Positions 735 to 18,401 of a stretch of DNA of 64,000 nucleotides are shown here, one piece after another. Each line of letters opens with the position of its first letter. Positions within the stretch are counted from its first letter, which is position 1. The stretch lies in contig CDRNST010000056.1 of the NCBI GenBank assembly GCA_977016875.1, forward strand, positions 2,418,001 through 2,482,000, written 5' to 3'. Both the position numbers and the translations under genes were made by a program. This stretch comes from Pavona decussata (taxonomy: Eukaryota). Under the pieces are notes generated by a model. It saw only the letters and a program-made list of their open reading frames with translations, did not search any database and was not told where the DNA came from.

Positions 735-1594
735 ACAAGTGTAACATAGGCTTTTGTACATCGGATGTGACATTCACTTTTTACGCCACAGAAGGCCAAT
801 ACTTTCAGCCTTTAAGGGAGAATAATGTGGGCTTCTGTACATTATGCTATTGGTTCATCATCATTTTTTTCCCACTACAATGATCGGAATCGAATCGGTG
901 ACATTTACTTTTTACGCTGCTAAACTATAATGCCAATTTAGCGAGTTTATTTACAGCCTTAAAACGAGTGTAATAGAGGCATTTGTCAGTATATCGGATG
1001 TGAGATTTAGTTATGCTACAGAACTAGAAGCCGAACGGCCAATTTAGTGTGGTTATTTTCATCGTTTAAGCGAGTATAATACGGGCTTTTGTACAATGTA
1101 CATCAAGTGTGACATTTACTTTTTACACCACACAAATTAAGTGAGTTCCAATTAAGTGAGAGCCAATTAAGTGAGTTCATTTTGAGTTAGTGTAATAAAG
1201 GCTTTTGTACAAGACATTGACTTCAGCAGCCTGTACTGAAGAATTTTTAAGCGTTTAGAGAGTTTTTCAAAGTTTTGAACTCAGTTATTGTCGTTGAAAC
1301 TCTTGTATAACTTTTTACTTAGTCTTACCTTATATTCTTTTACATTTACTCGTTACTTTATATTTAGTAATTATTTATAGACGACCCGTCAAGCTATCAA
1401 GCGTTAAATTTATCGAGTTGAAATAAAGGTTTTGGTTTGATTTGATTTGATTTAATGCTTTTGATTCATTACTTAATTGCTCCAACTTAATGCTTTCTTT
1501 TTTTTCCACGACAATAATCGTCATCTGATGTAACATTTACATTTTACGCTTTCGAACTAGAAGGCCAATTTAGTGAGTTTATTTTCGGCATTAA
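735..1594 (+). repeat. Degenerate tandem copies (~90-130 bp) of the last ~20 codons plus stop region of the BTB gene
   Basis: The unit gatgtgacatttactttttacgctacagaaggccaatttagtgagtt..tttagcc..taa..gtgtaatataggcttttgtaca recurs at ~765, 897, 997, 1106 and 1527. The original is at 673-760. Confidence 0.85.
1222..1452 (+). mobile_element. 3' end of a non-LTR retroelement with (TTTGA)n tail; inverted copy at ~5850-6085
   Basis: AATAAA followed by TTTGATTTGATTTGATTT. It interrupts the tandem array at the same point in both arms of the inverted duplication. Confidence 0.55.
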
Positions 1595-1595
1595 A

Positions 1596-2041
1596 GGCCC
1601 AGTGCAGACGCCGAACTTTTCATGAGCCGAACTTAATTTAAATAAAAGTTGGCCCAAATTACGAAAATCCCGCCTTTTGATTCAGACGCCAAACTAATTA
1701 GCCAAACTTAATTTACTTGAAGCAAAACCAATCGAAATGTCAGGAGTTTTTTCTATGTTTTAATTTTTTTTTATTTGAAATACGTTATAATAATTTATGC
1801 ATTAGGTTCGGCTCATGAAAAGTTCGACGTCTGAATCAAAGCCGTTCCAAAGCCGAAATTCCCGGCTGAGCCAGGCGGGAAGAACGGCTGAGCCGTTCCA
1901 AATTGAAACAGCCGTTCTCAACTGATTAAGACGCCGAACTTTTCATGTACTTAATTCGAGGTATTAGGTTCGGCCAAGAGAAGATGAAGGTACATCCTCT
2001 CTTGGTTCGGCTCATGAAAAGTTCGGCGTCTGAACCGGGCC
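1596..2041. mobile_element. PIF/Harbinger-like MITE
   Basis: ~37-bp TIRs GGCCC(A/G)GT(G/T)CAGACGCCGAACTTTTCATGAGCCGAAC with TAA/TTA-like flanks. The motif is repeated internally, and related sequence continues to ~3030. Confidence 0.7.
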
Positions 2042-2393
2042 TTAGACCGTAAGAATCAGCCGTATGAATCAGTTAGGATCGACAGATTTGTATTTGGGTC
2101 GACCCGCCGTTCTATTCGACTGCGCCAGTCGAATAGAGCGACAAAAGTACGCCTTCGATTTATACGTCGAACTTTTACGTGTGCCGAACCAAATTGAGAC
2201 GTAAGGTATAAATTATATTAATTATAGCTATCCCAGAGGTCTGCGCGTTCCATCAACTTGGTATGCGCAGTATGTTCAGTCTGAACAAGATGTCGGGAAA
2301 AGAGGAATGTGCTTGTTCTTCTTGTTTCGCAGCAACTAAATATACTTGTCTGAGATGCGAAAGATTTAAAAAAAAAAAGATTCTATTCTTGAT

Positions 2394-2800
2394 TTGCACA
2401 TGCACTTCAAACCGACAGAAACTTTCCAATACAGGCTATATCAAAGGCGTAGCCTCAGAACAAAATCTTCAAAAACAACATTTGAAGAAAGCATTACTCT
2501 ATTCAAACAGAGATTACGCTGCAGAGGTTACCTCGATAATCTTTTAGATAAAACTCTTTCAGAAGTCAATTTCAGCGAAAGAATGTCGGTATTACAAAAA
2601 AAAACAACAAAAAAAACCGCCCAAAAACATTTTGCCGTTTGTTACGGAATATCGCCCTTCTGTGCCTAACCTAAAACCATTCAGATGAGTAAGTGGCACT
2701 TGATAATCAGCCTCTGCTAAGAGAGATCTACAAAGACCCTTTCCTGCTTTCGTACAGCATAGGGAGATCTTGAAAGACGTACTCGTAAGAGCAAATTAGC
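2394..2800 (+). pseudogene. Decayed Penelope-like retroelement ORF fragment (post-RT/linker region)
   Basis: Frameshifted peptides HFKPTETFQY..LRT.SSKTTFEE.I..FK.RL..RGY..LSEV.F..R, then ILPFVTEYRPSVPNLK..KWHLI and SLKDVLVRA. Confidence 0.7.
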
Positions 2801-3032
2801 TTTGAAGGTCTTCCTATCGTCCAATAGGAGCCGTGTTTGGTCTGTCTTCATTATTTACTAAACAAGCTCTTCCATGTCAGAATTCATATTTTCCGCCATT
2901 TTGAAACTCGTTGAGTAAAAACAACAGCCGCTGACCACGAAAATCTATTTTCTCACTTCAGCTTTAAGTTCGACTTCAGTTAGGTTCGACGTCTGAATCA
3001 ACTGCCGAACTTAATTATTTGGGTCGACCTTA

Positions 3033-4153
3033 ATTAACAATTATTCACCGAAGTGGAGGTGAATAGTGGTGGATATCTACCGAAATAAATACAGTTGAAC
3101 CTCTCCACAACGGCCACAATGGGGACAGAAGAAAGTGGCCGTTGTGGAGAGGTGGCCGTTATGGGGAGGTAGGGGTGTAATATGACACCTTTTTTTTCGT
3201 GGTTATTGTGCCAAGTTCATGCTTACTATAGCCTATAATGGCAATCCAATCTTAAATAATATATACAGATAAAATACACAATAAAACGTAAATAATGTTT
3301 CGAATCAAAATTCGACAAAATGTTAACAAGAAGAAACGAGCAAGGTTCGCAACATTCGCTGTATTATTGTACACAATTTATGCTTACTGCAGGACATAAA
3401 TGGAACACAATCAAAATACGTATATCATTAAAATGGATATAGAAACGTAATGTTCCGAAGACAAATGTCGATCACTGCATCAACTTATAAAAAAGGTTTT
3501 TACAAAAAAGAGCTGTACTGGCCGTTGTCGAAAGGTTATTTTGGCAGTTGGGACGCACTTTAGTGGCCGTTGCCGTTGTAGAGAGGTTTAAACAAGAGGT
3601 AATGTATGGACTGTCCGCTGGGACAAAAAAAAGTGGCCGTTGTAGAGAGGTGGCCGTTGTGGAGAGGTGGCCGTTAGTGGAGGTTCGACTGTACCACACA
3701 AGCTGAATAACTAGCGGGCCAAAATTCCTTTATTTTTGACACTGTACCGACAAATGGTGGGAAATTTTAAAACCACGCGCGCCGCGCGGTAAGCGATTTC
3801 TTGTTGTAGAAAGTTCCGTCTCGCTTTTTTGCAAACAATTAAAACTTTTTGAGACACTTATTTAGTTGCTAAGGTATCATTTCTTTAACTGTTGTGTGAA
3901 ATTCGTCTTGATTTCGAAACCATGCTCCTAAACATTAGATGTTTCATTGTCTACATTGAAATTATAGTGCTCGGCAGTTTTCGTAAACAAGGCATTGTAG
4001 TTTCATTTTTTGCCTTAGAATATGAGGTTGGAAAATTAAATAACTTACCATTTAATACCTTCAAACTAAACTTTGTTGCCATTTTTGTATTTTTCGTAAC
4101 AGCTGCATCGTTTATCTAAAAAAATTCCTTCTCTTCGGTTGCTCGGAGGTGAG

Positions 4154-4188
<35 letters not shown>

Positions 4189-4232
4189 AGCGCGTGCGAA
4201 AGGCACTATTCAGTTGTGTGGTATATACTAAT
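3033..4232. repeat. Non-autonomous interspersed repeat (possibly Crypton-like), interrupted by a MITE
   Basis: Ends caattattcaccgaagtggaggtgaatagtgg... and ...cacctccgagctagccaatcagcgcg..gtgtggtatatactaat resemble a common anthozoan repeat recalled from memory. No TIR or TSD was seen. Confidence 0.4.
3092..3691. mobile_element. Tc1/mariner-pogo-type MITE
   Basis: TA|CAGTTGAACCTC...GAGGTTCGACTG|TA, with internal repeats of GTGGCCGTTGT(G/A)GAGAGG. Confidence 0.85.
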
Positions 4233-4577
4233 TAACAATTAGACGGCGAGCTCGAGGTTTCTATCGGCTGATATCAAAGGCGGTAGAAACCGTGATAATA
4301 TTGCGACAACTAAGCATAATTTTTCGCAATTCCTGCCCCGAGCGATTCTAGCGTGATTTTTGCCTTGCCACTTTTTTTCTTAGCCAGCAATACGTAATAG
4401 AGGGCGCCTGTACATTTTACCACAATACCTTTTGAACCTAACAGAGCCAATAGGCACAAAGAAAGCCGCATTTTTGGTGACGTTCGTCCCTGTACTAACA
4501 TTGTGTATGCTAGGTTTGAAGTTTTTAGACCTTTTCTCTGCGTTTTTATAAGCATTTTTAAGGTTTTCGTACGCTAA

Positions 4578-4904
4578 AGCCTGGTTTACACGTACGACGC
4601 AAGCACAAGCATAGGCACAAGGATGTTTACACGTGCGATAAGCATAAGCATAAGGTGACATACGCAAGCGCAAAAGCATAAAAGTGTGGCACAATCGCAC
4701 GACCGGACTGCCTTTTGGCGCGAAATTTGATTCCAACATGACGGACTAGAATGAACGCTGACTTGTCACTGTTTTTCAGTTCCCTCTCCTTGCGTTTTGT
4801 GCTTATGCTACGACGCAACGACGCAAGCACAAGCACGAGAGAATAAAATCATCCCATTCTCTTGTGCTTGTGCTTATGCTTGCTTCGTACGTGTAAACCA
4901 GGCT
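4578..4904. mobile_element. PIF/Harbinger-like MITE
   Basis: TAA|AGCCTGGTTTACACGTACGA...TCGTACGTGTAAACCAGGCT|TAA. The host repeat copy at ~36580-36800 shows the empty site with a single TTA. Confidence 0.9.
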
Positions 4905-5419
4905 TAAGAATAATGGGTAAATGTACAAGTCACTATCTCTTTCGGTACGGTGGATCACTCATGGCATTATTGCCACCATTAGGACTACTCACCGAAGATT
5001 GAACACTCATCAGTTGGCCCTTACATGTGCTACCTTACTTAATACTACTACACAATTCAAAGAATGATGCAATCGATGTTTACAATACCAGATATTCCAG
5101 AAAATTACATGCAGACTCTAATTCGAGGAACAAATATCGGAAATTTTCAGTAAAATATCGAGGATCGAGTTGTAACTTGAAACATTTTGTCCACACAGAT
5201 TAAGGAAATCAAGTCATTGTAAACTTTTATAAAAGAAGTAAAACGATTTATTCAAACTCATTATGATCCTTCCCATAATATTTACAAAATTATATAACAG
5301 TTATTTTACGGTAGAATTCTCAAAACAAAAAACAAAACAAAAAATACAAAATACAAAACACACACACAAAAAAACGTGTATACCAAGCATTTTATGAGCG
5401 GCTTTTTTCGGTATAGTAG

Positions 5420-6470
5420 CCCGATCCGATTGTAGTCGGAAGGCGTGAAGAAAACATTAAGTTGGAGCATTCATTAGTGGTGGACCAAAATTAAAGCATA
5501 ATGCACAAAAGCCTATATTATACTCGCTAAAATGCCGGAAATGAACTCACTAAATCGGCACTCTAGTTCGAAAGCGTAAAAAGTAAATGTTACATCAGAT
5601 GACAATTATTGTCGTGGAAAAAAGAAAGCATTAAGGTGGAGCATTTTAATGGTGAACCAAAAGCCAAATTAGACAGTGTAAAAAAGCCTATATCACGCTC
5701 GCTTTAAGGGCTGAAAGTGAACTCATTAAATTGGCCCTCTGTAGCGTAAATTTAAAAGTAAATGTCACATCAGATGCCGATCATTGTCGTTGGAAAAAAA
5801 AAGAAAGCATTAAGTTGGAGCATTGATTTAGTGGTGAATCAAAAGCATTAAATCAAATCAAATCAAATCAAATCAAAATCTTTAACTCAACTCGATAAAT
5901 TTAACGCTTGATAGCTTGACGGGTCGTATATAAATAATTACTAAATATAAAGTAACGAGTAAATACGAGAGAATATTAGGTAAGACTTAGTTAAAAGTTA
6001 TATAGGTGTTTCAACGATAACAACTGAATCCAAAACCCTAAAAACTCTCTAAACGCTTAAAGATTCTACAGTACAGGTTGCTGAAGTCAATGTCTTGTAC
6101 AAAAGCCTTTTTTTACACTAGCTTAAGGCTAAAAATGAACTCACTAAATTGGCCTTGTGTAGCGTAAAAAGTGAATGCCACATCTGATGCACATTGTACA
6201 AAATCCCATATTATACTAGCTTAAAGGATGCAAATAAACTCACTAAATAGGCCCTAATCTTCTAGTTCTGTAGCGTAAAAAGTAAATCTTACATCCGATA
6301 TACAAAAGCCTATATTACACTCGTTTGAAGGCTGAAAATAAACTCACTAAATTGGCCTTATTAATAGTTCAGTAGCGTATAAAGTAAATGTCACATTCGA
6401 TTCAGATTATTGTGGTGGTAAAAAAAAATGTCACATCCGATGTACAAAAGTCTATATTACATGAGACAGT
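5420..6470 (-). repeat. Degenerate tandem copies of the CDS 3' end downstream of the minus-strand BTB gene (mirror of 735-1594)
   Basis: aaatg(t/c)cacatc..., gtagcgtaaaaagtaaa and aactcactaaattggcc recur at ~5586, 5761, 6174, 6285, 6388 and 6427. Confidence 0.85.
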
Positions 6471-7742
6471 TTAAAGGCTAAAAATGAACTCGCTAAATTG
6501 GCCTTCTGTAGCGTAAAAAGTAAATGTCACACCAGAACGTTGAATTTCACGGTTTCCATTGAGACCGTACCAAGTCTTAGGACCGGTGATAACGGCGTGA
6601 AGACAGTAGACAATATCTTTCCTCAAAAATGCTGGTTCTTGAAATAAAACGTCAAACCCAAAATAGTCCCCTGACTCGTGACGCAGAGATAAAAATTTAC
6701 CTTCTGTAGAGGAAAGAATGTTTTTTTCTTCCGTCTTCTCAAGCGTAAGCCCAACGGAATGCGAACTATCCTCCTTGCCAAACAAGTACACTCCATGGAA
6801 TCTTATGTCTGTGTCCACGGAGAAATAGACCCTTTCAAAGCCAATGCAACCATACTTTGCTGAAGGGAACCTGCAAAGACGATCTGGGCGACGAGAAGGA
6901 CCGCATCTTGTAATCACTGACAACTCCTCACAAAAACTTGACGTCGATTTGAAACGGTTTGTTATGTTTTTTACCTCGTCAAACGCGAGTAGTTTGCTTT
7001 TCACGACCACGGAATTAAATTCGTCCTCTTTCATCTCGAAAAAGCGTATAGCCTTTACGATCCGTTCTCCGATAATTCCTCTTCTTTCGTGCCCATCAAC
7101 CACGATGCCTCGTTTTTCTGACTTCTTTGACGCCCATTCGACCACTCCTTTGAACAATTCTACTTCTCTGATGTTCAGAGTATCTCTCTCAACAACCTCT
7201 TCAAGCAAGGACCTCTCAAGTGTCGCAAATCCATCCGATTTAACAGCTGCGTCTGCATGTTCGTCGATTACTTTCCAGCATCGATCGATCAGTTCCTTCT
7301 CTTCATATACCAGAGCAAACTGCATGACGACGAACACATTTGATGGATCTAGATTATTTTGCAGATAGTCCGTGCATTTCTCAGCGAGCGAAGGCACCAT
7401 ATATTTCTTCGCCAAGTATAACACTCCCATCACATTACTTCCGCTCAAATTCACTTCATCGCTGTACATGTAACGAAGCAACTCCAACAGACTCTCGTAC
7501 TCACAATCAGGCAGTTCAATAGAGTCTCTAGTCTCCGCTAGCTCACCGTAAAACATAGCCTCAAACACAGGACTGCCAACCGACAGCACAAACTTGTGAG
7601 CTGGAATCACTTGCTTACTTTCACTTTCACCATCGCTCTGACGAACCACAAACTTCACATCGCTGAAGAGATCGTTGTTGAGCATAAACTTGTTTCTCTC
7701 TCTGATGGTGGGTCTTGTCGTTTGCCAGAATTCTGTAGCCAT
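6471..7742 (-). CDS. BTB-BACK-PHR protein (BTBD1/2/3/6-like), intact, intronless, 423 aa
   Basis: BTB motifs SDVKFVV, IPAHKFVL..SPVFEAMFYG, LLRYMYSDEV, LYLAKKY.VP.L; BACK motifs RDTL.I.E.ELF; PHR-type C-terminus. Confidence 0.95.
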   Translation of the reverse strand: MATEFWQTTRPTIRERNKFMLNNDLFSDVKFVVRQSDGESESKQVIPAHKFVLSVGSPVFEAMFYGELAETRDSIELPDCEYESLLELLRYMYSDEVNLSGSNVMGVLYLAKKYMVPSLAEKCTDYLQNNLDPSNVFVVMQFALVYEEKELIDRCWKVIDEHADAAVKSDGFATLERSLLEEVVERDTLNIREVELFKGVVEWASKKSEKRGIVVDGHERRGIIGERIVKAIRFFEMKEDEFNSVVVKSKLLAFDEVKNITNRFKSTSSFCEELSVITRCGPSRRPDRLCRFPSAKYGCIGFERVYFSVDTDIRFHGVYLFGKEDSSHSVGLTLEKTEEKNILSSTEGKFLSLRHESGDYFGFDVLFQEPAFLRKDIVYCLHAVITGPKTWYGLNGNREIQRSGVTFTFYATEGQFSEFIFSL

Positions 7743-10918: not shown

Positions 10919-13100
10919 TTAAGCATTCATTGCCGAGTGAGCCCAGGAATCCTGTTGTTTTCTCATTCCGTATACAACACTTACAAGAATGTTCTCCGTT
11001 ATGTAATCATTTGTCAGGGGCGGATTTGGGGGCGGGAGAGGGGGCGAGGGGGCCGCCCCTCGCGTTTTTCTTTCATTGTTGAAAAGTTTCTGTTATCGTA
11101 TTTTCAGTGGTATTTCGCAATCAATCGGGTTTTTTTTAATCCTTTTAAAGTCTGTCTTCCGAAGCTATAACTTTTGGTCCCAAATGCTCCCAGAATTCTG
11201 TAAGCTCCATGAATGTGAATTATTCATTGGAGGGAGGGGGGGGGGGGGGGCTCCCTTAGGTAATCATTCCCTCTATTATTTCCTTTCAGGGCGTGGATAA
11301 AAATCGCACTTTTACCATTTTAGATTCATACAATCCGTCTTCGAATTTCTATCGATGTTTAACGGTTATTGACTAATCGAGTACTCAAGTCTGATTAACA
11401 TTATGTCAAGCGCACGCCAACATTGTGAAGCAGGGGGAGGGGGAGGGGGGGGAGAGTACTCGAGGTTTTGGGTGCTTAACTGATGTATTACTTGAACATA
11501 TGAAATATGGAATTTATTAAATTTCAATGGCCAGTTTTACTGAAAAGTTATTGCTTTGTTTGTTTGTTCGACATATGCATCCGAACTACTGCAGTTGTGC
11601 CTCAGCAGGACTAATTTTTCCATCTCTTCACGGGATTAATCAATTATCCATTCATTTTTTGTTATTGAAACGCGCAAACGGTGCGCTTCCGAAAACAAAT
11701 AAATATGTGTTTGCTGTCTAGCCTTCGTCGCAGACGTATTATTCATATCGGCGGCGCCGGTTGGCCGGATTAAGTCCGCGAGCTCTCGTCTTGAGATCAG
11801 CGCAAGATAAGTCAATTTAAAAGTTTCCTTCTGAAATTAATTGCACATTAGGGTGACATCTATCTAGCAAAAGATTTATCACACCCAAGGTTAGACCGGC
11901 TTACCTTTTGCGCGGGGTGTCCTCGGTGCTTTTGTATTTGACCTCAGGATTCGATCCCCTTCTCATGTTGATCCCTGTATGGGGGGTCCTGTATTTTTCA
12001 GATGATATTAAATCAACGCAAAGAGGTCTCGGTTTGTAATGCAGCAAATTCTAATCCAGCAAATGGCGCACGAGCGATTCTCCCGCATAGATGCAAAAAC
12101 AACTGACAACTGAACTGATCCGGCCGTATCTCCTTACTTGGCCTTGTGTGCCTGTTAATAATAAAATAGGCGGATGGCCCAGGGACTGGGGGAGGAGGGT
12201 GGAGGGGGGGGGGGGGGGGTAGAAAAGTGGGTCCGGTTTTAAAATGTGTATCCGTCAAGAAGTCCCGTCTGGAGATGGAAAATCACAATTACATATCTTG
12301 GTCTCAAAATTGATGGAGGAAATCATGATGGTTTTTTATCTGAAAATCGGTAAGGAGTTTTTAGGATCCGTTGCCCGTCGACGGGTGTCAGGTGTCTAGC
12401 CGAGTGCAGGAGCTAGTGCTTTCACCTTACTCTGACAGTGCCTCATGATTTTTAATATAATTTCTCATTTCAAAAGAAATTGTTCTTGAAATCATTCGTT
12501 TCCATGGAATGTGAATATCATAAATAAAGTTCGGTGACAGTTTTACCAAAGTTGAGTATTTAGGGACCGGTCATTATTTATCGCCTGGGGGGGGTCGGAG
12601 TATTTAGGGGGGGATCACATGGTTTTTTGAAGACCTTTAGGGGGGATCAGCCGTAATTGACAAGCATAATGGGGGGGATCAGACCAAAAAAAAAAGGAAT
12701 TTTAGGTCGCGTCGGGACCCCGGGTGAGTGCATTTGTAAATACTTTGGTAGGATTTGCCGCTAGGACTCTAAACCCCCAACCATATATTCAAGACCACGT
12801 TCAGTTGTATTTTGTATTATGTAACCTTTATTCTAGCCCAGACACAAAACCCAAACCCTTTTACAGACCCTCCATTTTGTAAAAAAAAGTATCACTATCG
12901 TAGTCTAACATACACGTTGTTAATCAGGCACGATCTATTGAAATTAGAAAGGTAATCAAGATTTTGAGAATGGAATACTTACAATTGCTCAAAATTGTTT
13001 CATGACGTTTCAGTTTGTTTTATAGAGAATCGTAATCTAAAATCATAAACGTTCATTATTTTAATACGCGGCCGAATGAAAACAACAAATAAAAAAGTGT

Positions 13101-13949
13101 TTATTTTGGTGAGGCTGTATCTTGTTCCGCTTCCGTGTCAGAATCTTCGGCAGCCCTCTCCACTGGCTCTTGCACAGTCTCCACGTCAGATTCATCGGAA
13201 TCCTCCCCCGAACTTGACCCTCTTTCAGCACCATTGCTGCTATTCTCTTCGTTCATTCTGGCCACTACCACTTTCAAATTGCATGCCAGCTCTGTTTCAA
13301 ACACGCCTCTTTCCAAAAGCCATAGCAGAGGATCCAGGTGGAGACGCTTGACAAATCTCGCAGTGAATCCTGCATTAATACTTGAGACACATTTGTAAGT
13401 ATTCTTTTCGAGTGAATCGAAAACCTCTTTAGCTACCTCTTTTGAGGTAAGTTTTTCTAGGAGAATTGCTGCTCGCTGACGTAACCTTTTCTCCTTGATT
13501 TTTTTCACTTTTCTCTTGTTTTCTTTTTTTCTTCGGGATAGGCCGTTGTTCCCCATGGGAGATGGGAACTTTCTCTTCAAGCTCATGAGGGTGGTCGTGA
13601 GCGCATTGGAGGCTTTCTGCAGCTCTTGGTGTAAGGCCTTCACTCGCTCTTGAGCTTCCTGGAAATATTTGAGCTCATCACTTGCAAACGGCCTTAAGTT
13701 ATGCTCTTCTGTATAAAGGTTCTTTCGTCTGTTGTCGATAAATGAGAGCAAATCGCATGCTGAATTAAAGGCCTCATTGACAGCGGTCAAGGAGGACTCA
13801 CACTTCGCGACATCACCACTGCCCTTACATCCATCCACGCCTGACATGAACTTCGTGATGTTTTGGCACACTCCCCAATTCTCGTTTCTAAGCAAGTTGT
13901 TTTCTTTATCGGAAAGGGCTTTTATCTTTGTGTTTAACTGCCAACGCAT
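13101..13949 (-). CDS. Uncharacterised 282-aa helical/coiled-coil protein inside the Zator-like element
   Basis: Uninterrupted ORF with heptad-like segments, a basic NLS-like tract RRKKENKRKVKKIKEKRLRQR, an acidic tail and AATAAA at the stop. No family recognised. Confidence 0.65.
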   Translation of the reverse strand: MRWQLNTKIKALSDKENNLLRNENWGVCQNITKFMSGVDGCKGSGDVAKCESSLTAVNEAFNSACDLLSFIDNRRKNLYTEEHNLRPFASDELKYFQEAQERVKALHQELQKASNALTTTLMSLKRKFPSPMGNNGLSRRKKENKRKVKKIKEKRLRQRAAILLEKLTSKEVAKEVFDSLEKNTYKCVSSINAGFTARFVKRLHLDPLLWLLERGVFETELACNLKVVVARMNEENSSNGAERGSSSGEDSDESDVETVQEPVERAAEDSDTEAEQDTASPK

Positions 13950-14028
13950 TTGCTGTTGTTCTCACAATTTTTACACACATAGTGCTCTTGTTCTCGATAA
14001 GGAAACCCTGCAAGGTATCGTTACTACT

Positions 14029-16947
14029 ATGGACTCAGAATGGGATAAAATTTGTCTTAGAGTTATATTGCGATCCATATTCTCTAGAGAAGAAATGACA
14101 GCCCTAGGCTTCGATCCTGACAATCTTCCGTCTATGACGGAGAGAGTTAAATTCGTTGTTGAAGAGGTAAAAAATGCTAATGAGGCAGCAGCCGACCTCG
14201 TTGGGTTACGCTTAAATTTCAAGAAGGAAAAGCTGGAAAAGGAGATAAAAGAGAAGGAAAACCTTATTCAAAACAAAACAAATATTTGGTCATCCAAAAC
14301 GTTAGAAGAAATCCAAAGCGAAGTACAAAAACTCAAGGAAAAAGTTGAAGACACGGAGGGGCTTCTTCACAGCCAGCCCACCGAAAGCAATTATCAGAGA
14401 AAACGCCAAATGCTCAAGCGCCAAGCTTCAAGCCTTATCGAATCTAATCGACTGAAGAGGCGAAAGTTGTCAAACCAAGGTCCGAAGCCAAAGCTAGATG
14501 AGGAAGATGAAGACTTCATTGCAAAGGCAATTGAGGATAAATCATCCTATCATGGTAGACGGCATGATACGGTTCTCTATACCGGCCAGAGGGTGAAGAA
14601 GAAAAACCTTCTTTCAATCGCCAACTACCGACTAGCTCAACGTGGAAAGAAATTAATTCAATCCGCTACAACAGTATACAACAGGGCGAGACCGAGAAAC
14701 AAAAGAAGTCTCCAAGCGAAGCGCCATTATGGCAAAGGCCTATTCTGTTGGAAAAAGCCACCAAAAGGCGAAGAAAACACAAACGAAAACACTCACTACC
14801 AACGAGCACACGTAAAAAACATAAAAAGACGATTCTGGGGTGCCAGAAATTCCAGCGCGAGAAAGTTTTGTTTCATGAGAAGCACCGATGACAAGGCTTA
14901 CCTTAGACCAGGTACATCTGAAGGTTTTGACAAAGCCAGAAATCTTAGGATCTTAACATTATCAGATCACACTAAAGCAAGGAAGTTGCCAAAGTACGAC
15001 TGGCCTGAGAAAATGGTATACGTGACCCCGGGTTCTCACCGTGTTTTTACGAAGTCAAGTGTAATGAATGAAACTGAAGAGAAGCTGATAACTGAGAACG
15101 ATCGCCACTATGTATTTGTCAGGCCCAAAGCAATAGTGGGATCGTCAGGCACTGTATGGGCCAGCGAAACAGTTCGTTTGCGACATGAGGATCCATCAGC
15201 TTTTGAGGTTGACGAACCGACACCTGGCAGTCCACAGTACTCACTGGGATTTCGTAAATGCTGCGCGCGACTACACGATGACCTCTTTCTTTATTATGAT
15301 ATGACAGAGTCAGATGACCTAGACAAAATATCCGGAGAAACAGGAAGTAACTGTAAATTCTTCACTTACGAAAAAGAGAGAGCAGAGCACTTGAAATTAA
15401 GGATTGACAATTTGTTGCAGTTTTGCGAAGACACAGAAATGTCGGAGCACAATAGGGCTCTGTTTGCTAGTCAGATAATACCAGTCACGAAACGCATTTT
15501 AGATGCCATTGATGATCTGTTTAAAGAGGAAGTCGATTCAATGGAAAAAGATGCGAGAAAGGACAGGATTTTAAGGGTAACCAGTTCATGTAAACATGGT
15601 CTAGACTTTCTCGGAGATCTCTGCCTTCCACCTGTAAAGCCACGATGGGCTGACCTTACAGATGCTGGTCCGGGCGTAGGAGTTTCCAACTACGAAGTTA
15701 GATTTCGAGACGCCGAGTTAGCAAGGGTTCACAATTCCGATTATAGAGTGCGATGTCATCGTTCGAGGGGCGACAGCGGGCAAGGTGAAGCCGAAAGGAC
15801 AAACTCGGCAATTTCTGATGCTCTTGTGGATGGCGCAACTCTAGAGTGGGAAAAATATAGGAGGTTTGAGGATCTTTCAGAAGAGGAAATCAAACAACTG
15901 TCTCTCCAGTCATACGAAGAGTACGAAAAGAAACGGATGGAGAAAAATGCCTGGTATGTCTGTAGTCAGGTAGCCGAGAGAATTGATGATGCCCCTGTCC
16001 TTAAAGATTTCATCAAGAGCAAAGTTAGCGAGTCCCCTGATGAATTATTCTTTTTCAATTCTGTTTACCTCGACAACTATCGGGGTGCATCAGAACGAAA
16101 CAAAGAGCAAGCGCCCGGTGCAGCATACTTCCGAAAGATCGAATCGTTTATGGAAGACCACTATATTCGTGGAGAACTTTTTATGGAATTCTGTCGTGAT
16201 GCCTGTAAAGAGTCAAGAGAAGAAAGTTCCAATCTCTGTTCCTGGTGTTCTAACAATAGATGGGTCGGTCCAGAAACGGAAAGAATTCCGCAACCTGTAC
16301 CAGACTCAAACAATCCTGGACATTTCATGGATATCTATCAGACGGAATCGACGGGCAGGACACCAGATGATTACCTTCCAAGAAAATGTATTAAATATCT
16401 GTACGAGGAACATTCTGACAGTATCAGAAACGATCAGGATACCATGAAGAGCTTCTGCTCAAAATATAATGTGGAAGAGAAGCACGTCATTGCATATGTT
16501 AATCATTTGAAGGATATTGAGATCCGAAAGGACATGAGAACAAGAGCAGCTGAGGAGCGAAGAAGGCAAGAGGCCGAACGAACGTACAAGGACTTTCAAT
16601 GGGATAACCTCATCGAGGGTGGCAAAGTTGAAAAGTTGCGGGTAAGAGAACTAGACCTGTATCTCAACAAGCATGGTTTGACGACTGTGGGTCGGAAACT
16701 TGACAAAGTTAAGGCCATTCGATGTCACTATTACCGACAGAATAAAGAGACTGTGATAACAGAAGAACTGTCGAGTGATGAAGATGACGTGGAATCCGAG
16801 GATGAAGAATCCGAAAGTGAAGAGGCAGAGAGCGACGATGACTATGTTTTCGTGGATTTGGATGAACAGCCTGAGATTGGCACTTCCGCGACAATTCAGT
16901 TCGTATCTGACAAGCAAATATCTACCGTTGTTGTTCAAGGTCCATGA
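14029..16947 (+). CDS. Zator-like DDE transposase (~970 aa) with C-terminal SAP-like domain
   Basis: RSTDDKAY.RPG (D, nt 14887), LPKYDW, YVFVRPK..SS, KP....TDAGP (D, nt 15661), RGDSGQGEAERTNSAISDAL (E, nt 15793). SAP-like GKVEKLRVRELDLYLNKHGLTTVGRKLDKVKAI. The true start is uncertain because the frame is open from 13732. Confidence 0.8.
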   Translation: MDSEWDKICLRVILRSIFSREEMTALGFDPDNLPSMTERVKFVVEEVKNANEAAADLVGLRLNFKKEKLEKEIKEKENLIQNKTNIWSSKTLEEIQSEVQKLKEKVEDTEGLLHSQPTESNYQRKRQMLKRQASSLIESNRLKRRKLSNQGPKPKLDEEDEDFIAKAIEDKSSYHGRRHDTVLYTGQRVKKKNLLSIANYRLAQRGKKLIQSATTVYNRARPRNKRSLQAKRHYGKGLFCWKKPPKGEENTNENTHYQRAHVKNIKRRFWGARNSSARKFCFMRSTDDKAYLRPGTSEGFDKARNLRILTLSDHTKARKLPKYDWPEKMVYVTPGSHRVFTKSSVMNETEEKLITENDRHYVFVRPKAIVGSSGTVWASETVRLRHEDPSAFEVDEPTPGSPQYSLGFRKCCARLHDDLFLYYDMTESDDLDKISGETGSNCKFFTYEKERAEHLKLRIDNLLQFCEDTEMSEHNRALFASQIIPVTKRILDAIDDLFKEEVDSMEKDARKDRILRVTSSCKHGLDFLGDLCLPPVKPRWADLTDAGPGVGVSNYEVRFRDAELARVHNSDYRVRCHRSRGDSGQGEAERTNSAISDALVDGATLEWEKYRRFEDLSEEEIKQLSLQSYEEYEKKRMEKNAWYVCSQVAERIDDAPVLKDFIKSKVSESPDELFFFNSVYLDNYRGASERNKEQAPGAAYFRKIESFMEDHYIRGELFMEFCRDACKESREESSNLCSWCSNNRWVGPETERIPQPVPDSNNPGHFMDIYQTESTGRTPDDYLPRKCIKYLYEEHSDSIRNDQDTMKSFCSKYNVEEKHVIAYVNHLKDIEIRKDMRTRAAEERRRQEAERTYKDFQWDNLIEGGKVEKLRVRELDLYLNKHGLTTVGRKLDKVKAIRCHYYRQNKETVITEELSSDEDDVESEDEESESEEAESDDDYVFVDLDEQPEIGTSATIQFVSDKQISTVVVQGP

Positions 16948-17465
16948 GACGTAAGTACCACTATTAAAGATATCACTTGCATATTCAAAAAGTTATTTGG
17001 CGGTGGCTGGGAGAAAGGGGGGGGGGGGGGGATCATGAAACTTTCCACTACTAATAAGGGGGGATCTTTAAAAAACTAGATACTCTACGGGGGGATCACG
17101 TAAATGCTCCGATGTGACAACAAAAATACTCTGACCCCCCCCAGGCGATAAATAATGACCGGTCCCTTTAAAAGGGGCATTATCACGGAGATTTGCTATA
17201 TGTCGATCAAAACTACCCAAATGTTTGATAAAGGAACTTTTCTCTAACATGATTGCTCTCAGAGCTCCTGGAGGAAAAAATGGAATTATTTCTCCATCAA
17301 CTCAGTTTTTAACAATTTTTTTAAAATACGCAGGAGAGACAGACTGGAGCTAGATTTGAAAACATTGGCCATTTTTTTTTCAAGTTGCAATCCATTACCA
17401 TCCAAACAATCAACAGCCAAAGATGTCAAAAATGAACGATTCTATAAGTAGGCGACAATACCTCT

Positions 17466-18401
17466 TTAAATCTGTTCATAATCTGATGCTCTCCCCTTTT
17501 TTTCACTATTTATCAAACCAAACTTCACTGAGCTAGACCCGGAACAACGAGGACCAGATCGTTTGGTCGCTGGAAATCCCACGGGAAGATTTTCCACTAA
17601 ATTGATGTTTGCTTTGAACTTTACTTCGCCGAGTACGAGTATTTTACTTTTGAGAACGACAGAGTTAAATTCCTCCTGGGTCATAAGGGGAAAACGTATT
17701 GCTTTTACGATCCGTTCTCCTAAAATTTTTCTCATTTGCGGTCCATCTGCCACGATGCCTTGTCTTTGTGATTGTTTTGTTGCCCACCTGATGACTCCTT
17801 TGAACAATTCAACTTCGCCAATACTCAGGGTATCTCTGTGAACTACCGTTTCAAGTAAGGACCTCTCGATTGTCACAAATGCATCTGATTTCACCGCCGC
17901 TTCTGTGTGGTTGTCGATCATTTGCCAGCATCGGTCCACAAGATTTTTTTCCTCATATTTCTCAACCGCTGGGAGAATGCTGAAAACATTTGATGGATCT
18001 AAATGAATTTTTATATATCTCATGCATCTATCTGCGAGTGAAGGCACAATATATTTCTTAGCCACGTATAACACTCCAAGCACATTACTTCCGCTTAAAT
18101 TCACTTTATCACTGTACATGTAACGAAACAATTCCAACAGACTCTCGTACTCACAGTCAGGCAGTTCAATAGAGTCTCTAGTCTCTGCTAGTCTGCCGTT
18201 AAACATAGCTTCGAACACAGGACTGCTAACCGACAGCACATACTTGTGAGCTGGAATCACTTGCTTACTTTCACTTTCACCATCGCTCTGACGAACTACA
18301 AACTTCACATCGCTGAGGAGATCGTTGTTGAACGTAAACGTGATTCTTTCCTTGATCGTGGATCTTGTTGTTTGCCAATTTTCTTCGTAAACGTCTGTCA
18401 T
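17466..18401 (-). CDS. BTB-BACK protein truncated at the start of the PHR domain (311 aa); possible pseudogene
   Basis: Intact BTB and BACK. Homology to paralogues stops after SSVKFGLIN (~17510), about 350 bp from the Zator-like right TIR. Confidence 0.8.
   Translation of the reverse strand: MTDVYEENWQTTRSTIKERITFTFNNDLLSDVKFVVRQSDGESESKQVIPAHKYVLSVSSPVFEAMFNGRLAETRDSIELPDCEYESLLELFRYMYSDKVNLSGSNVLGVLYVAKKYIVPSLADRCMRYIKIHLDPSNVFSILPAVEKYEEKNLVDRCWQMIDNHTEAAVKSDAFVTIERSLLETVVHRDTLSIGEVELFKGVIRWATKQSQRQGIVADGPQMRKILGERIVKAIRFPLMTQEEFNSVVLKSKILVLGEVKFKANINLVENLPVGFPATKRSGPRCSGSSSVKFGLINSEKKGRASDYEQI

Follow-up and report, generated by a model that had tools for sequence, protein, structure and literature searches.

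A probable internal-deletion derivative of a two-gene, Zator-like DNA transposon family in the coral Pavona decussata

Introduction

Few eukaryotic cut-and-paste transposons need a second protein, and Harbinger is the tested case. Zator elements were originally described with a single transposase gene between short terminal inverted repeats (TIRs); the superfamily was reportedly described by Bao and colleagues in 2009 and is said to be related to bacterial ISAzo13/TP36 (PF07592). We analyzed a 64,000-nucleotide stretch of the genome of the coral Pavona decussata (contig CDRNST010000056.1, positions 2,418,001 to 2,482,000 of the forward strand; referred to below as the window), which contains at positions 12563–17166 an element with Zator-like ends and two divergent reading frames, one for a transposase and one for a second protein that we call the partner. 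This element is probably an internally deleted form of a 7.2-kb cut-and-paste DNA transposon that carries two genes and was recently active in this coral genome; the window copy is very probably non-autonomous.

Zator is similar to ISAzo13, and each generates 3-bp target-site duplications (PMC10045372). In PSI-BLAST searches Zator converges with mariner (PMC4455052, PMC7386202). Zator cores are without any Pfam match, and fungal Zator is concentrated in Rhizophagus, of the Mucoromycota (PMC5751038). The ribonuclease H (RNase-H) core of Zator-1_HM begins with FLSQDDKARVPIG (Majorek et al. 2014 supplement). A literature search, with Repbase and Dfam outside its scope, returned no description of a two-gene Zator element or of a SAM-domain transposon partner.

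Results

The window element is probably a deletion derivative

A whole-genome search with the window element as query returned at least 12 further copies at 94–100% identity, and in every other copy the segments matching query positions 1–1400 and 1416–4606 were set apart by 2.6–4.2 kb. Eleven copies were compared: three of them (L013, L014 and L015) were colinear across 7,216 bp at 98.8–100% identity, and the remaining ones carried nested insertions or other deletions. All four coding segments are open in L013 (contig C62, 686589–693804) and in L014 (contig C164), and these two could be autonomous source copies. With the intact copy L013 as reference, the window copy consists of element positions 1–1395, an unrelated filler of 18 bp (window 13959–13976) and element positions 4027–7216; the 2,631 bp at element positions 1396–4026 are gone.

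The deletion took the region of about 220 bp between the divergent start codons. On the partner side it also removed the SAM exon, the intron and the most conserved N-terminal motif, and the partner open reading frame (ORF) of the window begins at residue 68 of the partner's last exon. On the transposase side the loss comprises the predicted exon 1 and 431 nt from the start of the large exon, corresponding to about 200 N-terminal residues. The remaining frames are open and 99.5% identical to those of intact copies, which indicates that the deletion is recent and that the window ORFs are relics rather than genes. Both TIRs are kept, as are all six copies of a subterminal repeat, GGGGGGATC. The short form is present in one copy only in the assembly.

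A loss of 2,631 bp with an 18-bp filler would be an expected outcome of interrupted gap repair or end-joining, and internal deletion through faulty gap repair is what usually befalls cut-and-paste elements. The window copy has neither gene's full coding sequence, nor the control region, and we infer that it yields neither protein in functional form. It could still be mobilised in trans by intact copies, yet it is best regarded as an ordinary deletion derivative and probably a dead end. A second internal-deletion form, in which L013 position 1671 is joined to 6418 (4,746 bp skipped, 17 nt of filler), was seen in two independent coral RNA-library runs (X1 and X2) and was deeper than the full form in one of them.

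The ends of the window copy were set by at least 10 copies. The left TIR begins with GGGACCGGTC and occupies 12563–12605 on the plus strand, and the right TIR, on the minus strand at 17124–17166, ends with GACCGGTCCC. Taken one base further outward at each side, the inverted-repeat arms (12562–12605 and 17124–17167) are 44 nt long and 98% complementary, that is, at 43 of 44 positions. The left flank is TTA (12560–12562), half of a 3-bp target-site duplication that follows the family rule TWA, perfect in eight of nine other copies; the right flank is TTT (17167–17169), one base unlike the left, so that the pair reads as an imperfect 3-bp duplication or as a 4-bp TTTA. Just internal to each TIR lies a triplet of GGGGGGATC repeats, all on the plus strand. 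The left triplet spans 12608–12680 with a spacing of 32 bp (starts at 12608, 12640 and 12672), and the right triplet, in the same orientation, spans 17026–17097 with a spacing of 31–32 bp (starts at 17026, 17058 and 17089). These six occurrences, against 0.2 expected, are the only ones in the 64-kb window.

Between these ends, the transposase frame (13977–16947, plus strand) is truncated at its 5' end and encodes 972 amino acids from its first ATG at 14029; an ATTAAA lies at 16963, 16 nt past its stop codon. The partner remnant is what is left of the last exon, also truncated at the 5' end, and encodes 282 amino acids from an internal ATG (13101–13949, minus strand). An AATAAA polyadenylation signal on the same strand (13100–13105) overlaps its stop codon. 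The remnant retains a helical bundle, the basic motif RRKKENKRK and an acidic tail, and is without the SAM exon and the motif KKPWEKY..TER.KFYNS.

The first-pass annotation of this DNA had described 43/44-bp TIRs around two uninterrupted head-to-head ORFs, the shorter one encoding a 282-residue coiled-coil partner protein with a nuclear localisation signal, an acidic segment and an AATAAA of its own. The TIRs and the polyadenylation signal were found again, as were a basic cluster and an acidic tail in the shorter ORF. The two ORFs are likewise there in head-to-head arrangement (14029–16947, plus; 13101–13949, minus), but the 2,631-bp deletion means that they are not whole genes. An intact element is contradicted by the 7,216-bp copies, and the intact partner is predicted to be a two-exon protein of about 437 residues with an N-terminal SAM domain.

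The full-length family carries two divergent genes

The full element measures 7,216 bp, and the termini GGGACC...GGTCCC were found in all copies (nine copies with both ends). In eight of these nine, TAA or TTA flanks match on the two sides, which gives the family rule of a 3-bp TWA duplication. Intact members contain two divergent genes, for a transposase of about 1,190 residues and a partner of about 437 residues. About 220 bp separate their start codons, suggesting that both genes are driven from one bidirectional control region.

In L013, the large exon of the transposase gene is a frame of 1,129 residues with its ATG at 4109. Upstream of it, a 171-nt ORF (2725–2895) has a GT donor at its end and shares the frame of an AG acceptor at 4096, and joining the two predicts a protein of about 1,190 residues, matching the homologues of Nematostella, Ptychodera and lancelet (1,170–1,193 residues). 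Indels in the predicted exon 1 among copies are of 3 bp. A stretch of 35–40 nt within the predicted transposase intron (L013 3707–3745, absent from the window) reached a contig depth of 400–1,100 in each of the four RNA-library runs, versus about 10 elsewhere, and its flanks were highly varied; it belongs to a short interspersed repeat of very high abundance.

The SAM exon of the partner gene starts at L013 position 2505. It matched Pfam SAM_TNK at 37.4 bits (cut-off 25, E 2.6e-9) and also SAM_2 at 24.9 bits (cut-off 20.5), so that a SAM domain is present in the partner of the intact coral copy, from an exon that the window copy does not have. The modelled partner intron is 153 nt long, GT..AG and phase-matched, and the joined exons give about 437 residues; the joined frame restores the stretch PKK(R/Q)KQA(I/V)LSF that is present in the homologue P0115. 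The last exon of the intact copy is 67 residues longer than the window ORF. Protein searches and folding were carried out exon by exon, on the separate exons. The element is contained in 23 public sequencing runs.

The partner gene is conserved beyond corals

The partner opens with its SAM domain, which is followed by the conserved motif KPWEKY..T.R..(Y/F)(F/Y)N and an extended helical bundle. The invariant basic motif RR.KEN..K comes next, and towards its C-terminus the protein has a small domain of helices and an acidic tail. A search for relatives of the partner gave 31 matches, including a Montipora protein of 466 residues with the full architecture. In a diverged subfamily of the same genome (L027), a transposase 75% identical and a partner 58% identical to those of the family stand head-to-head, and on a Montipora-like contig (L026) a transposase of 45% identity is accompanied by a SAM exon and a partner exon, again head-to-head. 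Called genes on a second ENA contig, which encodes the partner relative P0134, have the same layout.

The arrangement extends to other animals. In Nematostella (L032), a transposase of 49% identity is found head-to-head with a SAM_1 exon (57.8 bits, E 1.5e-15) and a 285-residue exon; the TIRs around the pair share 24 of 30 bases with the coral TIR and are flanked by a TAA/TAA duplication. In the hemichordate Ptychodera flava (L033), a transposase of 50% identity is paired with a SAM-like exon, which at 19.9 bits falls under the Pfam cut-off, and a 302-residue exon, within 44-nt TIRs starting AGGGA. BLASTP with the coral partner exon gave E values of 7e-25 to Ptychodera and 4e-12 to Nematostella. 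When seven partner sequences were aligned, invariant residues clustered in the N-terminal motif and in RR.KEN..K....K..R.

More distant relatives have other layouts. In Branchiostoma floridae (L031, 14721–15737 and 16212–16457, minus strand), a multi-exon transposase homologue is followed tail-to-tail by a 338-residue helical ORF, which hhalign aligned with the partner core at 95.8% probability and E 7.8e-9, a value to be read with the usual caution for helical proteins. No SAM exon was found at this lancelet locus, where a Cys-rich exon precedes the 338-residue ORF instead. In L034 (ENA contig NODE_765166, 4199–5836), a transposase of 27% identity has a SAP domain, and downstream of it on that strand lies a 545-residue ORF with a WHD_LYAR domain in place of a SAM partner.

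Selection was gauged by comparing the two subfamilies of this genome, between which synonymous sites are saturated (proportion of synonymous differences, pS, 0.73–0.93). The proportion of nonsynonymous differences (pN) was 0.28 for the partner, and 0.17 in its N-terminal part, versus a pS of 0.81; for the transposase, pN was 0.14 versus a pS of 0.73. Both genes are under purifying selection, which is weaker on the partner: its nonsynonymous divergence (dN) is 0.35 versus 0.16 for the transposase, an evolutionary rate about twice as high.

The structure model of the partner's last exon (predicted local distance difference test, pLDDT, 77.8) consists of long antiparallel helices and a further helix with the basic motif, after which come a small domain of helices and an acidic tail that is disordered. 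Partner proteins from five taxa showed no match to NAB NCD2, Myb or any other DNA-binding family.

These data support the partner gene as a genuine and conserved part of a two-gene lineage that reaches well beyond corals. The earlier suggestion of a two-component Zator lineage thus holds for the conserved pair, which recurs in L027, L026, Nematostella and Ptychodera, and lacks statistical support for homology to Zator/ISAzo13; the Zator-like ends that it invoked, a 3-bp TWA duplication and GG termini, are present. A test proposed along with it was whether partner homologues always lie beside the transposase within TIRs, as they do, head-to-head, in Nematostella and Ptychodera; the tail-to-tail lancelet genes and the different second ORF of L034 depart from this pattern. 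A partner confined to this one copy, which would have spoken against such a lineage, is at odds with its presence in other copies, subfamilies and phyla, and the proposed comparison of substitution rates gave the purifying pattern described above.

The transposase has a predicted DDE core

A word-based protein search found 107 transposase relatives, nearly all of them unnamed or annotated as "uncharacterized", from corals, Nematostella, Ptychodera, Branchiostoma, Mytilus and a fish. No Pfam family matched the catalytic core in the window ORFs, the full-length proteins or 25 aligned homologues. The only Pfam matches in these 25 were SAP (PF02037) in seven and PHD in one, and the window transposase itself had no Pfam SAP match. 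Three acidic residues, D444, D702 and E746 in the numbering of the 1,129-residue large-exon protein of intact copies, are invariant in the 25 aligned sequences. They delimit the putative DDE catalytic core at window positions 14887–15795 (plus strand), and inspection of the codons placed them at 14887–14889, 15661–15663 and 15793–15795, respectively.

An AlphaFold (AF2) model of the transposase built from the 25-sequence alignment had a pLDDT of 77.5. It comprises an N-terminal alpha/beta domain (residues 1–135), a long coiled coil (187–296) and strands and helices in an RNase-H-like order, with D444 on strand 1, D702 after strand 4 and E746 on the following helix. A four-helix insertion (563–687) separates the first and second aspartates. 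Near the C-terminus, helices 1029–1038 and 1047–1061 form a SAP-like helix-extended-helix, encoded at window positions 16636–16743 (plus strand) and aligning with the SAP-matching region of homologues. A Cys-containing region and an acidic tail are also present. The model and the invariant residues together point to an RNase-H-fold DDE core.

For neither transposase nor partner did Foldseek find a PDB match with E ≤ 0.001, and an all-against-representatives structure search was dominated by helical bundles. The best solved DDE match was the mariner-type Metnase (Z 8.6, root-mean-square deviation 3.7, 172 residues aligned), with foamy-virus integrase next (Z 8.0). Among ESM Atlas neighbours, those with a name were all ISAzo13 (PF07592), both by features (0.78–0.80) and by shape (target-normalised TM score 0.43–0.52); the best unnamed neighbours came from Mucoromycota and Cnidaria.

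We consider Zator-like (ISAzo13-related, ITm-like DDE) the best label for the family, a placement that rests on end structure and fold, with homology unproven. A 3-bp duplication is the family rule, and TWA was also seen in the Nematostella and Pocillopora copies; the window copy itself has TTA/TTT. The termini are GG, and the TIRs, at 43–44 bp, are longer than those Zator is known for. The family sequence corresponding to the start of the Zator-1_HM core is FMRSTDDKAYLRPG, and a comparison by eye shows that the two have in common a DDKA motif at the first catalytic aspartate. A six-frame search of the genome with PF07592 gave two sub-threshold matches, both on contig C175 and none at any element copy. 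The 25 homologues contained no match to PF13359 (DDE_Tnp_4) or PF04827, and the partner proteins none to Myb/SANT, so that no Harbinger domain is detectable.

Two database entries related to the transposase deserve mention. A fragment of the transposase family, 47% identical, lies on a 1,062-bp contig (L035, JAAXHI010000573.1) of a 'Candidatus Poribacteria' metagenome-assembled genome from Porites lutea; the contig is almost certainly coral host DNA misbinned into the bacterial genome. A Stylophora pistillata protein (P0006, from L053, LSMT01001154.1) named 'Transient receptor potential cation channel subfamily A member 1' (TRPA1) is 98% identical to the transposase over 69% of the query, and its gene model is probably chimeric or misnamed, having swallowed a transposon fragment.

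Near-identical copies occur in other reef corals

The element was found in Porites lobata (L054:2260–9524) at 97.4–98.7% identity, intron and untranslated parts included, and in Pocillopora meandrina (L055:3040–9329) at 96.4–98.0%, again including non-coding parts. A 2-kb fragment from Stylophora pistillata (L053:20792–22823) was 98.0% identical. These copies all occupy different sites, each on a long contig. The host DNA beside the Porites and Pocillopora copies matches the Pavona genome in exons only, at 70–88%. The contrast between element identity of about 98% and host-exon identity of 70–88% is a classic signature that points to a candidate case of recent horizontal transposon transfer among reef corals. 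Assembly cross-contamination is an unlikely source of these matches because the integration sites are distinct.

A neighbouring gene

A 311-residue ORF at window positions 17466–18401 (minus strand) resembles, as judged by eye, a BTB/POZ-domain protein. Its stop codon is 300 bp from the right end of the element, placing the transposon directly downstream of that stop codon.

Discussion

A possible two-subunit transposon

The partner may be a required accessory subunit of the transposition complex, a role that we favour tentatively and by analogy. Such a protein would self-associate through its SAM domain and dock on the coiled coil of the transposase by helix-helix contacts, and its basic motif would provide nuclear import, binding of the periodic GGGGGGATC repeats, or both. 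The proposed role parallels that of the Myb-like protein of Harbinger. On a larger scale, it is possible that an ancient Zator-like clade, dating at least from the cnidarian-bilaterian ancestor, operates as an obligate two-subunit system in which a SAM/helical-bundle protein assembles with a DDE transposase on periodic subterminal repeats, and that horizontal spread is now carrying a single member of the clade among distantly related reef-building corals, represented by the Pavona genome, Porites, Pocillopora and Stylophora.

Several points weigh against these readings. Contact between partner and transposase, and DNA binding by either protein, are proposals. The helical core of the partner matched generic helical bundles only, at Z ≤ 11.8 where the tool's level for helical folds is about 13, and its fold therefore reveals no function. 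The layouts of the lancelet locus (tail-to-tail) and of L034 (a WHD_LYAR second ORF) differ from that of the coral element, so that the SAM partner is not universal in the wider family and accessory genes vary. In contigs from four RNA libraries compared with an intact copy, no splice joints were found, coverage was even over exons, introns and flanks, and contigs extended beyond the element's end; transcription and both intron models are therefore unconfirmed, and DNA carry-over or unspliced read-through would fit equally well. Because the deleted form is single-copy in the assembly, there is no sign that it has been mobilised. As for the name Zator, PF07592 matched none of the 25 homologues, and hhalign comparison with five bacterial ISAzo13 transposases gave E values of 0.65–0.73, not significant, whether whole profiles were used or the core with the insertion removed. 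In the block from the second aspartate to the glutamate, these alignments pair AD.GGSNG...NKIEH with TDAGPGVG...EAER, and the spacing from D to E is 43 in ISAzo13 versus 44 in the family.

A somewhat doubtful alternative to the accessory-subunit role is that the partner is a carried regulator that stands outside the transposition chemistry, acting as a self-limiting inhibitor, as an antagonist of chromatin or silencing, or as an expression timer through SAM-mediated nuclear assembly. A conserved protein under purifying selection, equipped with a nuclear-type basic motif and an acidic tail, is compatible with such functions. Its twofold faster evolution might suit a protein that faces host factors, and the distant relatives swap the partner for other accessory genes. 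On the other hand, strict head-to-head pairing with a shared control region of 220 bp points to stoichiometric co-expression, the invariant partner residues are held across cnidarians and a hemichordate, and the periodic subterminal repeats require a binding protein. None of these arguments is decisive against a regulator.

It is unlikely that the family stands outside Zator, as an unnamed DDE superfamily of its own or as a deep ITm-like branch, with no more than 3-bp TWA duplications and GG ends in common with Zator and Harbinger. The lack of a significant sequence link to ISAzo13/PF07592 would be explained in this way, as would the very large size of the transposase and the presence in it of domains that have not been reported for Zator, and the Atlas scores, by features and by shape, are mere leads. 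Yet all named Atlas neighbours found by the two methods are ISAzo13 and not one of the far commoner DDE families. The top unnamed neighbours include Mucoromycota, the group in which fungal Zator is concentrated, in Rhizophagus (PMC5751038). The DDKA motif recurs in Zator-1_HM, the D-to-E spacing fits ISAzo13, and the mariner-like best solved match agrees with the published affinity of Zator to the ITm group. We therefore retain Zator-like as the working label.

It is very improbable that the partner does nothing for the element, having arrived as a captured fragment of a host gene or as an independent nested insertion. SAM domains are common host modules, and the Nematostella and Montipora versions are listed by NCBI as ordinary genes of the host. 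Nevertheless, the position and orientation of the partner inside the TIRs are the same in elements of two phyla whose transposases are 45–50% identical, its ORF stays open despite saturated synonymous sites, and it is surrounded by no TIRs or target duplication of its own. Finally, the idea that the window copy is a complete autonomous two-ORF element and that the longer copies carry an insertion can draw on its intact TIRs and on two open ORFs that are 99.5% identical to intact copies and have polyadenylation signals, but is already refuted in practice, given that the extra 2.6 kb elsewhere is coding sequence continuous with both ORFs (SAM exon, partner motif and transposase N-terminus) and conserved in the Nematostella, Ptychodera and Montipora-like elements, that an unrelated 18-bp filler marks the window junction, and that the short form occurs in a single copy.

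If the accessory-subunit proposal is correct, the family would represent a second, unrelated two-subunit design and accessory subunits would have arisen more than once; it would also offer a new, apparently active coral transposon system for study. Transposase and partner are now annotated as "uncharacterized" host genes in Nematostella, Ptychodera and several corals, and in one Stylophora gene model the transposase is joined to a gene named TRPA1. Annotation therefore improves once the pair is recognised.

Comparison with known systems

With Zator, the family has in common 3-bp duplications, 5'-GG termini, a Pfam-less DDE transposase and the DDKA motif, as well as ISAzo13 as nearest neighbours in predicted structure and a mariner-type nearest solved DDE fold. 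It differs in having two genes rather than the single gene by which Zator is known, a difference of architecture and not of catalysis, in its 44-bp TIRs with periodic subterminal repeats, and in a transposase of about 1,190 residues with an N-terminal domain, a coiled coil, a helical insertion and a SAP-like tail. Bacterial ISAzo13 elements likewise make 3-bp duplications (PMC10045372) and have the same order of catalytic motifs, a D-to-E spacing of 43 versus 44, and the rank of best named structural neighbours. They have a single transposase of about 400 residues, with no helical insertion and no partner gene.

Kolobok with KolX is another eukaryotic cut-and-paste lineage with a conserved second gene of unclear role. 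Its transposase is of a different superfamily, its target is TTAA and its partner has a zinc-binding fold, and there is no sequence relation. PIF/Harbinger resembles the coral family in its 3-bp TWA duplication, its G-rich termini and its two-gene design, whereas its partner is Myb/SANT-like and that of the coral family combines a SAM domain with a helical bundle, encoded by a gene that diverges with the transposase gene from a short shared region. In Harbinger, the second protein is thought to lead the transposase to the subterminal repeats and to the nucleus, and this is the closest functional analogy to the role proposed here for the partner.

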